Numbered from the stretch's first letter, positions 16,034 through 22,924 are shown. The stretch: 64,000 nt of DNA from Selaginella moellendorffii (GCF_000143415.4 NW_003314269.1:1220623-1284622); one strand, 5' to 3'. A program made the numbers and translations. Notes: a model not told the origin generated them from the sequence alone.

Positions 16034-17282
16034 TTACATGTCATCGAGGATGGCAGCCAGCCTCTGGAGCTCCTCTTGGCAAGAGTGTGGGTAGCGGACG
16101 CCTTCCTCTTGAGGCTGGTGCTGGCTTTCAACAAAGGCTGGGTGCGAACGCCAGGGATCATGTGAACTTGAGGCATTGGCGACGGTCACGGGGTGCTGAG
16201 CAGCACCAAGAGCCGCAGAGTGGCTCCATTGCTGGAAGTAACTCGGCGAGCAGGCCGACTCGTCGTCGAGGAAGCTGCTGGGGCCGTTGATGATCTCCCA
16301 CAGGGACGGCGACGATGAGACTTCCCGCTTCACGCATGCAACAGTTGTACTCGTGGATTGCTGCTGCTGCTCGCTGGAGTCCGTCTCCTGCTTTTGGAGA
16401 CAGCACGGGAGCTGTGCTGCGGCCTCTGGCTGCGGGAAGCGAGGGGGAGGCATGAGCATTGCCAGTTGCTGCCAGGAACTCCCGGAGGAAGAAGAAGAGG
16501 AAGCGGACGAGGAGGGTGGCACGACCAGATACTCGTGAGCGGAGGTGTCAGCGCCTGGCATCTCCTGGACGAGCAGGTTCATCATGGTCTCCGCTAAGTT
16601 CTCCTGCGCTTGCTGACTGCTGGTGAATTGGATGGTCGCAGGTGTGGACGAGGATGGCGACGCGGCCTGCGACGCCTCCTCGGTGACGCAGCTCAGGCCG
16701 CTGGCGGTGCTGCTGCTGATGGCCTGATGAGTCATTGGATCGATCCCCATCTGCCGGAGCTTCTTCTTGATCCTGGTGTTCCAGTAGTTTTTTATCTCGT
16801 TGTCCGTCCGGCCGGGGAGCTGTGCCGCAATGCGAGACCACCTGAGACACAAAATTTCATGCCAACCGGTGACTATGCTTTTCAAAGCTCGTTTTTGGAT
16901 TTCTCCTGATAGATGGTACCTGTTTCCCATGACAGCGTGCAGATCGATGATCATCTGCTCCTCTTGCTCCGTGAGAACACCGCGTTTGAGATCGGGGCGG
17001 AGATAATTCGTCCACCGCAAGCGGCAGCTCTTTCCGCAGCGTAGGAGTCCTGCGAATTTCGTCGAGTGAGAGATGAGAGATCGATCAATTCAGCTACAAA
17101 GAGGTAAGGTTTTGTTCCTTTTTCTCTTGGCAATGCCTTCTTTGCTTACCAGCTAGCTTAGGAACTGCACGCCAGCATCCGTGTCCATGGCTGGTGATGT
17201 AGTGTATGAGCTTCCTGTCCTCCTCTGCAGTCCATGGCCCCTTTTTAAGTCCTACTTTCTCACAGCATGGCTGCCTTCCCAT
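16034..17282 (-). CDS. R2R3-MYB transcription factor (MYB20/42/43/85-like)
   Basis: [30 protein letters not shown]|[26 protein letters not shown]|[37 protein letters not shown]; two canonical introns. Confidence 0.95.
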
Positions 17283-17945: not shown

Positions 17946-19183
17946 TGTGTCGGCTGAGCATGACAGATCCAAGCGATTGATGTAAACACCGGCCCCTTTG
18001 ATTACAAGCAAGGCAATTGCGGGGGCGAGCAGGAGATTCGTTGCGAAGATGCTACAAGAAGAATAGGATGTTCTAGAATACACATAGATTGATCAAAACT
18101 GGAGAAGCTTAATTGTTTGTTTGCATTCGCGCATATAATAACTGGAGCCAACGTGGGCCATGGTGAAATTATAAAAGCGTGCACCGTCCGCGTGGGGGTA
18201 TATGCGACAAGATGCCCCCAGTACCGTACGAGAGAGAGAAAAGGTGGTGGGCATGGGCATGGGGGAAAGAATGAATGGCAGCATAGCTTTTAGATTGTGT
18301 GGTGTGGTGCTAAAATGGAGGAGAAAAGAGAGTGAAGAGACCCCACGCCTTTGAGATGGCATCATGGGCTGCTGATGATGCCATGCATGGCGTGCACGCA
18401 TCATTTCACATACGCAACTTTGAAGGGGTTTGTTGTTTGTTTGTACAAGGAGGAACTGTCCAGTGTGTTTGATGTTGAAGCTCCAACTTCCATCTTTTCC
18501 ATCTTCCATCTCTTCCATCCTCCATCCAGCCAGAGAGGGGTCTACTAGCAAAATAAATTCGATTAAACTTGGCTTGTGATGCAATAGTCTAGAGACATGG
18601 AGCTCAAGATTCCATGATCGACAACAATTCCCCATAGTTGGTTGTTTCGTTTCTCTCTTGGAAGTCACTCTCTCGATCCAGCTTGGAACGGGGTCTCTCT
18701 CTCTCTCTCTCTCGCGCGCGCGGTTATCCCTGTAGCAAGCTCGAGATGCTTAGCTTGGACGAGTCCTTGCGACAGAGGCTGGACGAATGCTCGCGTCGCG
18801 TCTCTGCGCGTTACACTTTGTCGTCCAGTCTTGCGTCAGGAGTAGACATACGGAAGAATCACAAGGACGCCAGGCCGGAGTGAGAGCAAAAAGAGAGGAA
18901 AAGAATCGTGTAAGGACATGACAAGCGCATAGCTAACGGCCATGCTTATGTCATACTGTGACGCTTATCAGTAGTACACAGCTTATGTGGAGAGAGAGAC
19001 GACACTATGGTGAGAAAAAAGAAAAAGACGAAGGATGAGAGATGAGAGACGAAAGACGAAGACGAGAAAGAAAAAAAAAAGAGAAACGCTCGAAGTTTCG
19101 GAGAGAGGAAGAGTTTTTTTTACCTCTCAAGAAGCTGCGAATGATGATGGCGTCCCACGTTGGTACGTCTCGCCGGCTATTTC

Positions 19184-21894
19184 TCAGGCGTCCACTCGGA
19201 GCTGATCGTCGAGAGAAGCGATCTCTTGGAAGAAAGCTCGGAAGTGGCGGAAGGCGGCGTCAATATCTTCCGTGCCGCACATCTCTCGCACGCTGCAAAG
19301 CCCCCAGAGAGTCAGCCAGCGCGAAAGATATAATTCCCAATCATGGAGCAAACCTGTGCATCGCGAGCTGTGGAAGACCGCAATCCACCAAACGGATGCC
19401 ATATCCTGCCGCCAGCACTGAATCGATGGTCGAGCAGCATCCAACGTCACTGACCACGGAATAGTTCTGCGCGCAAGAGAAAGCGTTAAAAATGAGAGAC
19501 ACAGAGCGTGGACGAGTCGAGGCTGACCTGTGTCGGAATACAATTCCGCTTGGCGACCTCCTTGAACAGAAACGCAGAGATCGCGTCTGTCGCATTGTTC
19601 TGTGTTAGATTGTGTTTGATTACGAGACCGTCGTGGAGTTTTGGCTGGTTGTGCTCCACATCATTCTCGGCATTGTTGGGATGCAAAGCATGAGCCATGT
19701 CTGCAGATACTGCCACACAACACAAGGAAAAGAAAAGAACAAAAAGTTAAACACAACCCTTCCTCAGACTCTGTATGATGCGTACCAACAAACGAGCGTC
19801 GGATTGCTCGCTCTACAACGCCTTCGCTTGTAGAACCGCGAGCCAGCCATCGTGATATCCTCATCATGGCCTGGAACATGGTCTGTGGACCAGCTCCTTG
19901 AACGGCTTCTGATCCAACCTGAAATCTCCCATGTAAAGTCAAAGTTCGAAAAAAAGAAATACAAAAACAATACCTCTCCATTGTCGAAGAGTGCAACCAT
20001 GCGGATGTAATCCTCATCCAGCATCGACAGCGGTTCAGAAGACGTATCCAGCAGAGCCCAGAGAGCGCAGAAAGCCGACGCCAGGTTGTCCAGCCTTCCC
20101 GAAAACACAAACTCTTGACGAGCACCTCCGATGCATGCAGGCTGAGTGTCGTAAATGCTCAGCTCAAAATCCGCGATTTCACTGACATCGCAGTGAAGCT
20201 CGTCTGCGAGCACCTGAAAAAGTGTGACTGGCTGAATGCCAGGGCAAAGAGTTACCTGCAAAAGAAGAGGGTGGTGGACGTCGTTGCTTTGGTTTCCTTC
20301 ATGCTCACCCGGCGACTCCGAGTCACAAGAAACAGCCAGTTCTGCTTCAATTTGAGTAGCAAGGACTGGAGCTAGTTGGGACTCCAAATCTTGCTTCATA
20401 CTGTCTGACCTGTAGAGAAAATAGTTTGAGCAAGAGTGTCAAGAAAGACGAGACAGACCTGTCCATATGAAACGCCAAACTCGGGATCCGCAATATTGGC
20501 CTTCGAACACGAACAAGATCATGAATAAGCTCTCCATTTTTTGTTCTACGTAAAACCCGCCCGGCGACACTTAAATCCCTGTCAAACCAGGTATTCCATA
20601 GTCCAGTCCCATAAGCTTGGACTCTAACACGTAGAAAACCACCTTTAGTAGCCGCAGATACTGGTTTAAGCTTTGGACAGGGACTATCTGTATGAGCAGC
20701 CAATACATGAAAGCCACCACCGGGTTTATACCTGCACATTGACATCAAGCCATGCATTAGTAAATGGAAAAGGAACAAAGATGAGAAGAAGATGCGTACT
20801 TCCGACCAATGGCGAAAGCAAATATCGAGGACATATTTCGCGTGAAGAAATAGCGACCACCTGGCTGTAACTCCCACTCTTCACACTCGTTCAGCTGCTG
20901 GAAGCCTGATTCCAGCAAATGCCTCCTTGCCTCCACTGATATAAGTAAAACCCCGCATCAGTACCGGGAGAGAACTTACACGAAGTCACCAGATGGTGCT
21001 CTCACAAGTGGCATGAAAAGGTGTCGTAGAGTTGTTCAAGAACTCTATGAGATTTGGAACAACTGATAACGCGTCGCGACCAAGGAGAGCCTGGAGAAAA
21101 ACAAAACAAGGTGAGTAAGAAACAAGATCCAGTCGCGAAACAATACCTGCCTTTTCCGGAAAAAAACCTCTCTGATGGCTCGGCCCAGCGCCAGCCAAGA
21201 AGCGAAGATCGGCCATGGTGGGAGTCGGCTGCGAGAGCGCCAAGTTTGGGTGAACCTCGGCCTGGAAGCTACTTTCATCCACATCGACACCTTCCGGCTG
21301 CTTGGCATCACCATTCACTCCATCGTAGTGCACGTCCCCGGATCCTCCGAGCATGGCCATCCCATTCCCGAGCTGTGGAGACGCGAGCAAGGTCCGGGGC
21401 AGCCCCAGAGCAGTGGTGGCGGACGACTCCCTCGCGCGCTTGGGCCTCTTGGCGTTCTTCTGTGGACAATTCACGCACATCGCCTCCCCGGTCTTGGCTC
21501 GGCAGTGCCAGCAGTAGAGATTTGGTATCTGGATCCACTTCCCCTGGATCTCGTCAAGCTGGAAGAAGCTCTTGAGATCCACGTTGAGGTGGCGATTGAT
21601 GCAAAACCGGCAAAACCACCGCCTCCGGCGCTCCCCCTTGGTGTTGGAGTGGCCCGAGCAGTCGGGCGCCGGGCAGATGAAGAGGCCGCCGAATTGCCGG
21701 GTGGAGTTCTTCACCTTCCTGGAGATCCAGTCGCGAGGCCAGCCCTCACCGCGCTCCAGCTGCTTGGCCGCCTCGGCTGGAGTGGTGGTGTGGTGGTGCG
21801 TGCACCAGTGGCACGCCGCGCGGAGCTCCGTGTTGAGCTTGTTCCACAGGCCGTCGTCAATGAGGAAGGACGGCGCGCGCAGCACCTCCTCCAT
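19184..21894 (-). CDS. Cys-rich zinc-finger + NLS fused to an M18 aspartyl-aminopeptidase-like domain (catalytic Glu substituted)
   Basis: ORF 21894-20986 has five Cys pairs and runs without a stop into LIEFLNNSTTPFHA; downstream exons AHTDSPC, WFDRDLSVAGR, SGRLDNL, FDNGE|VGS, SADMAHALHPN, QLAMH|SVREMCG. Confidence 0.8.
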
Positions 21895-22255
21895 TGGGCC
21901 GAGAGAAAATATTTTCTTGTTCTTTGATTCTTCTTCCCTGATCGATCGATCGGAGAAGAAGAGGGATCTTTGCTGCTGCTACCAGTCGCGAAATTCCGCG
22001 CAGAATTCCGTTTGCTGCTGGATTTGCCACGCGAAGACGCTGCTCGTCGCAGTCCAGAGGCTCCCGGAAGGCGGCAATGCCATTCTTCTTGGCGCCGGGA
22101 GAGAAGATCTGGAGCGCGCTTACCTATAATGCGGTCATGGAATCCGCGTCTAGCCGGATTGAAGCGCTGCACTCCAGCCCAGAGAAGAGATCCAAGAACC
22201 CTAAAATCCTGGGAACATATTTTAGGGCTCCAGAGTTCTTGGAGAAGAGAATCGC

Positions 22256-22924
22256 ATGGCGGCCGCGGTGAAGGAGCTCCAGCGGCAGCTGGAATTGCGA
22301 GCGTCTGAGCTCAACAAGATTCAGAAAGGTATGGTGATCGCGATCGCGATTGTTGCAGGGATTCCAGCTCTAACAAGACCGATCGGGCGATACAGACATT
22401 AGCAAGAATCACCAAGTGAGGAGGCAGTACACGATCCAGCAAGGGGAGAATGAGATGGTGATCAAGGTCCGTGCTTAGGAATCGCATTTCTCTTCTAGAA
22501 CTTGAAAGTTTCTTCTCGTGAATCATGCTTGCCAGGAACTAGAGCTTCTCAAAGAGGACGCCAATGTGTTTAAGCTCATTGGACCAGTGCTCGTGAAGCA
22601 AGACCTGGTGGAAGCCAAGGCCAACGTGAACAAGCGCATCGAGTATATCACAGGAGAACTGTCAGTCCAAGCACATCCTCCATAGCTCGGAGCTTTCTTC
22701 TCACTTTTTCTTTTCTCTTTTCTTTTCCTCATAGGAGGAGACTTGACGGATCATTGAAAAGCCTAGAGGATCAACAAGGCTCCAAAAGAGAAGAGGTAGA
22801 GCATTGCAAAATCTTTGTTCTTCTCGTTTTCTTTTCCAATCAAACTCCTTTTTTTTCTCTCGTCTTTCAGGTTCTAAAGTTGCAGCAACGCTTGCAATCG
22901 AGTAAAGCTAAAGCCTCAGCGTGA
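22256..22924 (+). CDS. PFD6: Prefoldin subunit 6
   Basis: DISKNHQVRRQYTIQQGENEMVIK|ELELLKEDANVFKLIGPVLVKQDLVEAKANVNKRIEYI. Confidence 0.93.

Follow-up and report, generated by a model that had tools for sequence, protein, structure and literature searches.

Gene structure and product

The 64,000-nucleotide window of Selaginella moellendorffii DNA (GCF_000143415.4 NW_003314269.1:1220623-1284622) contains, on its minus strand, a gene of peptidase family M18 that begins with an ATG at 21894 and ends with a TGA at 19186-19184, and in which a codon for the glutamate proposed to activate water in aspartyl aminopeptidases has been replaced by GGA, a codon for glycine. The coding region (19184-21894, minus strand, as are all features of this gene given below) is made up of ten segments at 21894-21151, 21090-21006, 20935-20800, 20731-20459, 20409-20256, 20213-19974, 19918-19786, 19709-19528, 19466-19354 and 19292-19184, the borders of which were placed from the sequence and all joints of which were found in contigs from three RNA-like sequencing runs (X3, X6 and X14). 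The 723-codon frame is open. The gene product is NCBI protein P0156 (722 amino acids), in which the ten exon peptides were identical and in order, split codons included. This protein was reached by a library search with the exon at 20213-19974 (exon 5 in that search), which led to a Sphagnum protein and from there, by word search, to P0156, which was then used to represent the complete product.

The M18 part, comprising residues ~249-722 (19184-21090), was indicated by Pfam, by an AlphaFold2 (AF2) model and by matches to known structures. Matches to Peptidase_M18 (PF02127) were noted on five exons in exon-wise Pfam scans, and the full-length match scored 444.9 bits and covered all 432 positions of the profile (1-432), which establishes homology with family M18. 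Residues 1-248 are encoded by the first coding exon (21151-21894), as indicated by an RNA contig and by identity to moss and clubmoss copies, and comprise a Cys/His module, a basic stretch (KRPKRAR) and a variable linker. In the transcript contigs, this 248-codon exon was joined to the M18 part in a single reading frame.

All nine introns were absent from the RNA contigs, and the predicted junctions were all seen, with GT..AG ends, together with one additional joint. The latter (joint 21088/21149 in X3, X6 and X14) carries four ambiguous letters and resolves to a GC-AG intron at 21150-21091 that is 60 nucleotides long, in frame and stop-free. Retention of this intron would add 20 residues and leave the frame unbroken; it was spliced out in all three RNA-like runs.

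The glycine codon in DNA and RNA

The exon at 20213-19974 ends with codons for IRMVALFDNGE, of which FDNGE occupies 19988-19974, with AAT at 19982-19980, GGA (Gly543) at 19979-19977 and GAG (Glu544) at 19976-19974; a GT donor comes next. This codon was checked over 18300-22700 in one DNA-like run and the three RNA-like runs, which came from four studies. The contig from the DNA run (X1, a diverged accession) spanned 19960-21964 with introns and showed several differences, none of them at 19977-19979. X3 and X6 each gave one intron-free contig of 2470 nucleotides that ran from 22150 to 19139 and had no other letters over 19972-20211, and the loose end of the X14 contig reads TTCGACAATGGAG on the coding strand. 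Since contigs from four studies, DNA and RNA alike, carried the same codon, GGA is not an assembly error; RNA editing was ruled out as well, the DNA and RNA contigs all reading GGA.

A sequence-only reading of this DNA had reported FDNGE in place of FDNEE, with GGA at 19979-19977, and had described the exons as open and the splice sites as intact. The motif is seen in the sequence as reported, and all of the assumed junctions are used in the RNA contigs. The assembly error for which that reading had allowed was not found in the one DNA and three RNA-like runs, which agree with one another at the codon.

Expression was also indicated by the presence of most of the words of the gene in 20 runs from 9 studies, in shares (0.59-0.72) expected for spliced RNA. 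Within-species coding differences in the runs consisted of five synonymous and three non-synonymous changes.

Active-site residues and predicted fold

In human DNPEP, metals are held by His94, Asp264, Glu302, Asp346 and His440, Glu301 is the proposed activator of the nucleophilic water, the P1 pocket consists of Lys374, His349 and Tyr381, and His170 is supplied by the neighbouring subunit, the His170Phe mutant being inactive (PMC3472314). In PfTET3, which belongs to family M42, the corresponding residue, Glu207, is described as the general base and adjoins the ligand Glu208 (PMC4745047). HMMER alignments with 4dyo_A, in which chain index 311 corresponds to Glu301 (an offset of 10 from the numbering of the paper, checked on His94), placed DNGE over DNEE, with Gly543 (19977-19979) at the position of Glu301 and Glu544 (19974-19976) at that of the metal ligand Glu302, which is retained.

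The H.D.E.D.H metal signature was complete in P0156, its ligands being His335 in AAHTDSP (20694-20692), Asp506 in SGRLDNL (20090-20088), Glu544, Asp592 in the SADMAHALHPNN motif and His686, the equivalent of His440, in AMH|S (19356-19358), where the codon for Ser687 is split by the last intron. Also retained were the counterparts of His170 (His410, 20467-20469, on the loop that crosses into the active site of the neighbouring subunit), of His349 (His595, in the same motif as Asp592) and of Lys374 (Lys620, in the LVIKHNLTQNNAT motif). The P1-pocket stretch, K620-HNLTQN-N627 (19594-19617), keeps Lys374 and has Asn for both Arg380 and Tyr381, the latter being Asn627. Further along, GCCSTIDS carries Cys660 (19434-19436), by which GCG has become GCC, and IDS in place of IGP. 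In moss proteins of the same type, discussed below, His349 of the acidic-P1 pocket is replaced by Pro, Glu or Asp.

The consensus of 47 canonical relatives reads FDNEE, HPNY, KHNANQRYAT and GCGSTIGP at the corresponding places, and all 47 canonical sequences of alignment A1 had Glu at the Glu301 site. At 18 key sites in an alignment of ~130 proteins, 111 canonical relatives read HDHDEEDHH[FY]KQRYGGPH and P0156 reads HDHDGEDHHNKQNNCDSH. P0156 has the His of the swapped loop found in active aspartyl aminopeptidases, and lacks, in DNA as well as in RNA, the water-activating Glu that precedes the ligand Glu. These comparisons bear out what the sequence-only reading had claimed of the active site, namely, that the first Glu was lost, that the metal ligands in HTDSP, RLDN, the second Glu, SADMAH and MHS were kept (five of five are present) and that the motifs NQRYAT, HPNY and GCGSTIGP were altered, which they are with respect to the 47 relatives; the alignment with canonical relatives that it had proposed gave Glu in all of these and Gly in P0156.

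The fold of the M18 part was predicted with confidence by AF2 (residues 249-722; mean predicted local distance difference test score (pLDDT) 86.9, predicted template modelling score 0.89). Template modelling (TM) scores of the model were 0.87-0.90 against 4DYO and 3VAT and 0.87 against the PfM18AAP structure, 4EME, which indicates the M18 fold with its proteolytic and dimerisation domains; the confidence of the model drops at the His170 loop, at an acidic insert and directly after DNGE. As expected of a pseudoenzyme, an essential catalytic residue is therefore gone with the fold kept. Compared with human DNPEP (4DYO), to which it is 43% identical with a TM score of 0.87-0.90, P0156 matches at His94, Asp264, Glu302, Asp346, His440, His170, His349 and Lys374 and differs in having Gly for Glu301 and Asn for Tyr381 and in its N-terminal module, which DNPEP is without.

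A glycine-type clade in mosses and clubmosses

Among the 150 best representatives from a library of 1.8 billion proteins, the closest matches read DSGE, DNGE, DIGE or DSPE and over 110 of the rest had D[NH]EE, EE being present in every match from outside the clade described here that covered the motif. Because EE is invariant in canonical and non-clade sequences, chance is, on these alignments, not a sensible explanation of Gly543.

Nine proteins in the alignment of ~130 had Gly at the Glu301 position together with other pocket changes, and a Sphagnum protein reading DIGE (P0004) was the tenth. Members came from Selaginella, Diphasiastrum, Sphagnum (three) and Physcomitrium (two paralogues) and included two moss-like transcripts; all of those that covered the site had Gly. 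In a maximum-likelihood tree of 47 rows, the ten Gly-type proteins were monophyletic (Shimodaira-Hasegawa-like approximate likelihood ratio test, 100) on a stem of 0.43 changes per site, and nested inside land-plant DAP2 proteins of the NEE type, above Klebsormidium. Since the lycophyte and moss subclades within the clade mirror the species tree, and since the clade nests in land-plant DAP2, the duplication that gave rise to it is placed by this tree before the split between mosses and vascular plants. Gly-type members from liverworts, ferns or seed plants were not among the protein matches returned, the plant genomes themselves not having been searched.

Nine of the ten clade members retained all five metal ligands, and Lys374 was kept as Lys or Arg. 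His170 was kept in Selaginella and Diphasiastrum; the moss members all have Leu, Pro, Ile, Val or Arg instead, and His349 and Tyr381 varied among the members of the clade. In a Sphagnum troendelagicum protein (P0157), Lys replaces the ligand Glu302 and Asn replaces the Asp of FDxGE. Its branch is long (0.45), which might mean that this copy has degenerated further or that the gene model is poor. Short or chimeric Gly-type models reading DIGE and then QGS were also noted on Sphagnum chromosomes 03, 05 and 15 (P0007, P0008, P0293, P0295 and P0296); these may be partial duplicates or pseudogenes. The named members of fragment clusters were all from Sphagnum.

A canonical, fully intact DAP2 (P0165) is present in the same Selaginella species. 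Compared with plant DAP2 (AtDAP2, At5g04710, and P0165), P0156 has the same PF02127 domain, the same fold and the same five ligands at 57-66% identity (A1), but has Gly for Glu301, GCC, Asn at Arg380 and Tyr381, and IDS, as well as a 248-residue N-terminal extension with a Cys/His module instead of a transit peptide. Aspartyl aminopeptidases of the active type hydrolyse Asp- and Glu-pNA and form a dodecamer of more than 600 kDa, for which AtDAP1 and AtDAP2 values have been published (PMC5638241). Two DAP2 paralogues each have been described in moss and clubmoss, from models of 477-519 amino acids that are without the N-terminal module, the moss pair PpDAP2b1 and PpDAP2b2 being 87% identical (Park et al., 2017; PMC5638241). 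The two Physcomitrium members of the Gly-type clade are also 87% identical and, because these values match, are probably the same genes as PpDAP2b1 and PpDAP2b2. In the searchable text and tables of that paper there is no mention of active-site loss or of the N-terminal module (PMC5638241), and no other paper on this gene was found.

Selection and pattern of change

Purifying selection on the clade was evident from a comparison of two moss transcripts (L001 and L002) that stood in for the two Physcomitrium paralogues. The number of non-synonymous changes per site (dN) was 0.055 and that of synonymous changes (dS) 0.72-0.73, which gave a dN/dS ratio (omega) of 0.076 for the whole protein; omega for the M18 part was 0.083. 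The corresponding value for a pair of canonical moss DAP2 sequences (L004 and L005) was 0.039, although dS in this pair (~1.4) was near saturation and the comparison is only a rough one. A pseudogene was ruled out by the open frame, complete splicing and an omega of 0.08. Spliced RNA contigs from three studies and omega values of 0.076-0.083 are, rather, what is expected of a pseudoenzyme that is expressed and under purifying selection.

Changes within the clade were unevenly distributed. Of 114 columns that were at least 95% conserved in canonical aspartyl aminopeptidases, the clade keeps 71, has switched and fixed two (Glu543Gly and Gly660Cys only) and varies at 41, with the variable columns clustering in elements of the active site, at 407-411 (the His170 loop), 546-553, 594-595 (His349), 620-628 (Lys374 to Tyr381) and 664-666 (IGP). 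Gains that became fixed in the clade were Asp or Glu for Asn420 on the swapped loop, Asp for Asn, Thr or Ser at 630 beside the pocket motif, and Cys for Gly660. Release from catalytic constraint, with the fold and metal site still constrained, would look like this pattern.

The fused N-terminal module

The Cys/His-rich module occupies residues ~1-145 and is followed by the basic, KR-rich stretch. Identity over residues 1-165 was 76-87% among Selaginella, Diphasiastrum, Physcomitrium and moss contigs, which exceeds the conservation of the M18 body. Invariant residues of the module include C28, H29, C31, H33, H34, C74, H82, C95, C98 and H102, after which two further CxxC pairs follow. Fusion of module and M18 part in frame was found in the moss transcripts L001 and L002 as well, and in word-based searches the module was found only in this M18 gene family. 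No Pfam family matched the module, even at E = 10, and leads to zf-4CXXC_R1 and PHD from an atlas search, at 0.76-0.84, were below threshold and were not counted. The residue pattern of the module suggests that it may bind zinc and direct the protein to the nucleus.

Two observations concern the coding sequence of the module. In X1, one base was deleted from a run of five Gs at 21633, within the first coding exon, which would shift the frame of the module; the same run had other single-base homopolymer indels outside the coding sequence, and the deletion at 21633 may be an error. Among moss transcripts of one study, L003 was without a short stretch of the module coding region that is present in L002 and was shifted in frame, which might reflect alternative splicing or mis-splicing, with an M18-only product as the result.

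Interpretation and alternative explanations

Judged by its residues, P0156 is a member of family M18 by homology, yet lacks the catalytic feature by which active aspartyl aminopeptidases are defined, and it should therefore not be filed among them. The gene is probably a long-retained M18 pseudo-peptidase, or else a strongly altered enzyme, the product of which probably acts as a metal-binding, oligomeric scaffold for the N-terminal module. Stated in full, it is likely that the product forms a metal-binding and probably oligomeric M18 particle of little or no catalytic activity that serves as a scaffold or binding platform on which the module is displayed. Loss of activity is predicted by analogy with DNPEP and the TET enzymes of family M42, from what the corresponding Glu does in them. 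Binding of metal, assembly into oligomers, a nuclear location and a function as scaffold are predicted as well. To our knowledge, M18 aminopeptidases have been treated as uniformly active enzymes.

An old paralogue lineage of DAP2 would, on this interpretation, have arisen before mosses and lycophytes separated, with the change of the general-base Glu to Gly and the gain of Cys in the GCG motif on its stem branch. Afterwards, the M18 body would have kept its fold and five metal ligands while elements concerned with hydrolysis or with selection of Asp and Glu (the His170 loop, His349, Arg380, Tyr381 and the IGP loop) drifted, hydrolysis being carried by the canonical DAP1 and DAP2 paralogues of the same genome (e.g., P0165). 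On such a particle, the N-terminal module would be displayed in many copies. Metal ligands may have been retained for stability, as in PfTET3, in which removal of the M1 metal leads to partial dissociation of the dodecamer (PMC4745047), a non-catalytic reason for keeping them.

The sequence-only reading had likewise taken the gene to be a pseudo-peptidase, retained for a structural role. The first part of this view was strengthened by the Gly found throughout the clade, by expression, by an omega of 0.08, and by the fold and ligands being kept with the pocket relaxed; the structural role is only one non-catalytic option, the kept metal site and Lys374 fitting a ligand-binding role equally well.

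Several points weigh against the scaffold interpretation. Retention of the five metal ligands and Lys374 for more than 400 million years would also be expected if metal chemistry or ligand binding had survived, Selaginella and Diphasiastrum still have His170, and the acidic residues fixed in the clade at 420 (Asp or Glu) and 630 (Asp) might, in principle, take over from the base that was lost. In addition, the AF2 model of the N-terminal module was unusable (pLDDT 45), and catalytic inactivity, oligomeric state, metal content and location are predicted properties.

According to one alternative, which is a special case of a non-catalytic function and is considered somewhat unlikely, the dinuclear site without its base binds free N-termini of proteins or peptides uncut, and the Cys/His module and basic stretch direct the protein to a nuclear or nucleic-acid target. 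Retention of the metal ligands and Lys374 with loss of the base fits such a reader of N-termini, as does the near-invariance of the fused module, and zinc-finger domains are known to bind M18 particles, the Ape4-Nbr1 ZZ complex (7DDE) being among the matches. Pocket residues that differ between mosses and lycophytes argue against a single conserved ligand, however, the lead from the module to zf-4CXXC_R1 (0.84) was below the level for counting, and the argument is purely inferential.

An unlikely explanation is that the product is still a hydrolase of altered mechanism or substrate, in which the metal-bound water is deprotonated by an acidic residue specific to the clade, by Cys660 or by the substrate, and in which the remodelled pocket selects another N-terminal residue or a non-peptide. 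Consistent with such an enzyme, nine of the ten members keep all five metal ligands, with Lys374 as Lys or Arg, canonical DAP2 is under purifying selection that is only slightly stronger, and Asp or Glu420, Asp630 and Cys660, all fixed in the clade and near the site, might each join in the chemistry. The general base is gone in every member, however, and His170, replacement of which by Phe inactivates human DNPEP, is lost in all moss members; moreover, the variability of His349 and Tyr381 resembles release from constraint and not a retuned pocket.

Quite improbable, as a more elaborate proposal, is a land-plant-specific M18 cage, its general base lost and its dinuclear metal site kept, that acts as a natural, non-cleaving substrate trap for free protein N-termini and is brought to the nucleus or chromatin by an undescribed, almost invariant multi-zinc module fused to it, present in the ancestor of mosses and vascular plants and lost in seed plants. 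An artefact or a decaying pseudogene, with GGA an error or the gene no longer selected, has a negligible probability: the deletion at 21633 and other homopolymer indels of X1 speak for it, but those other indels suggest read or assembly error or strain variation, the codon was the same in four runs from four studies, introns are removed in RNA from an open 723-codon frame, and Gly is common to moss and clubmoss orthologues with an omega of 0.08.

Known systems offer partial parallels. Pseudopeptidases of other metallopeptidase families (e.g., Ecm14 of family M14, PMC7706225) resemble P0156 in a lost catalytic residue, a kept fold, selection and a presumed binding or scaffold role, and differ from it in that P0156 keeps all metal ligands, with only the base gone. 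Families M18, M28, M20 and M42 are never mentioned in a 2024 review of pseudopeptidases (PMC11266112). Fungal autophagy cargo of family M18 (Ape1, and Ape4 with Nbr1 ZZ in 7DDE, a strong sequence and fold match) provides examples of an M18 dodecamer that is recognised as a large particle by zinc fingers. Ape1 and Ape4 are active enzymes, though, and their zinc finger is on a separate receptor, whereas the Cys/His module of P0156 is in the same chain and homology with ZZ is not claimed.

P0156 and its moss and clubmoss orthologues are annotated automatically as "probable aspartyl aminopeptidase", and Gly-type genes have probably been counted as ordinary DAP2 paralogues in the sole study of plant aspartyl aminopeptidases, which would inflate the apparent enzyme repertoire of early land plants. 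A lineage that has kept a dead site for several hundred million years, under selection near that on the active enzyme, would point to a non-catalytic function of a large self-assembling particle, in which conservation is higher in the fused module than in the body of the enzyme. Gene targeting is easy in Physcomitrium, which makes the question directly testable.

Neighbouring genes

A spliced gene on the plus strand with prefoldin-like open reading frame pieces (22150-22700) is arranged head to head with the M18 gene, its start and the 5' end of the M18 transcript being ~100 bases apart, and has GT-AG joints at 22326/22394 and 22464/22534. Downstream of the M18 gene, an R2R3-MYB-like gene lies at 16034-17282 on the minus strand.

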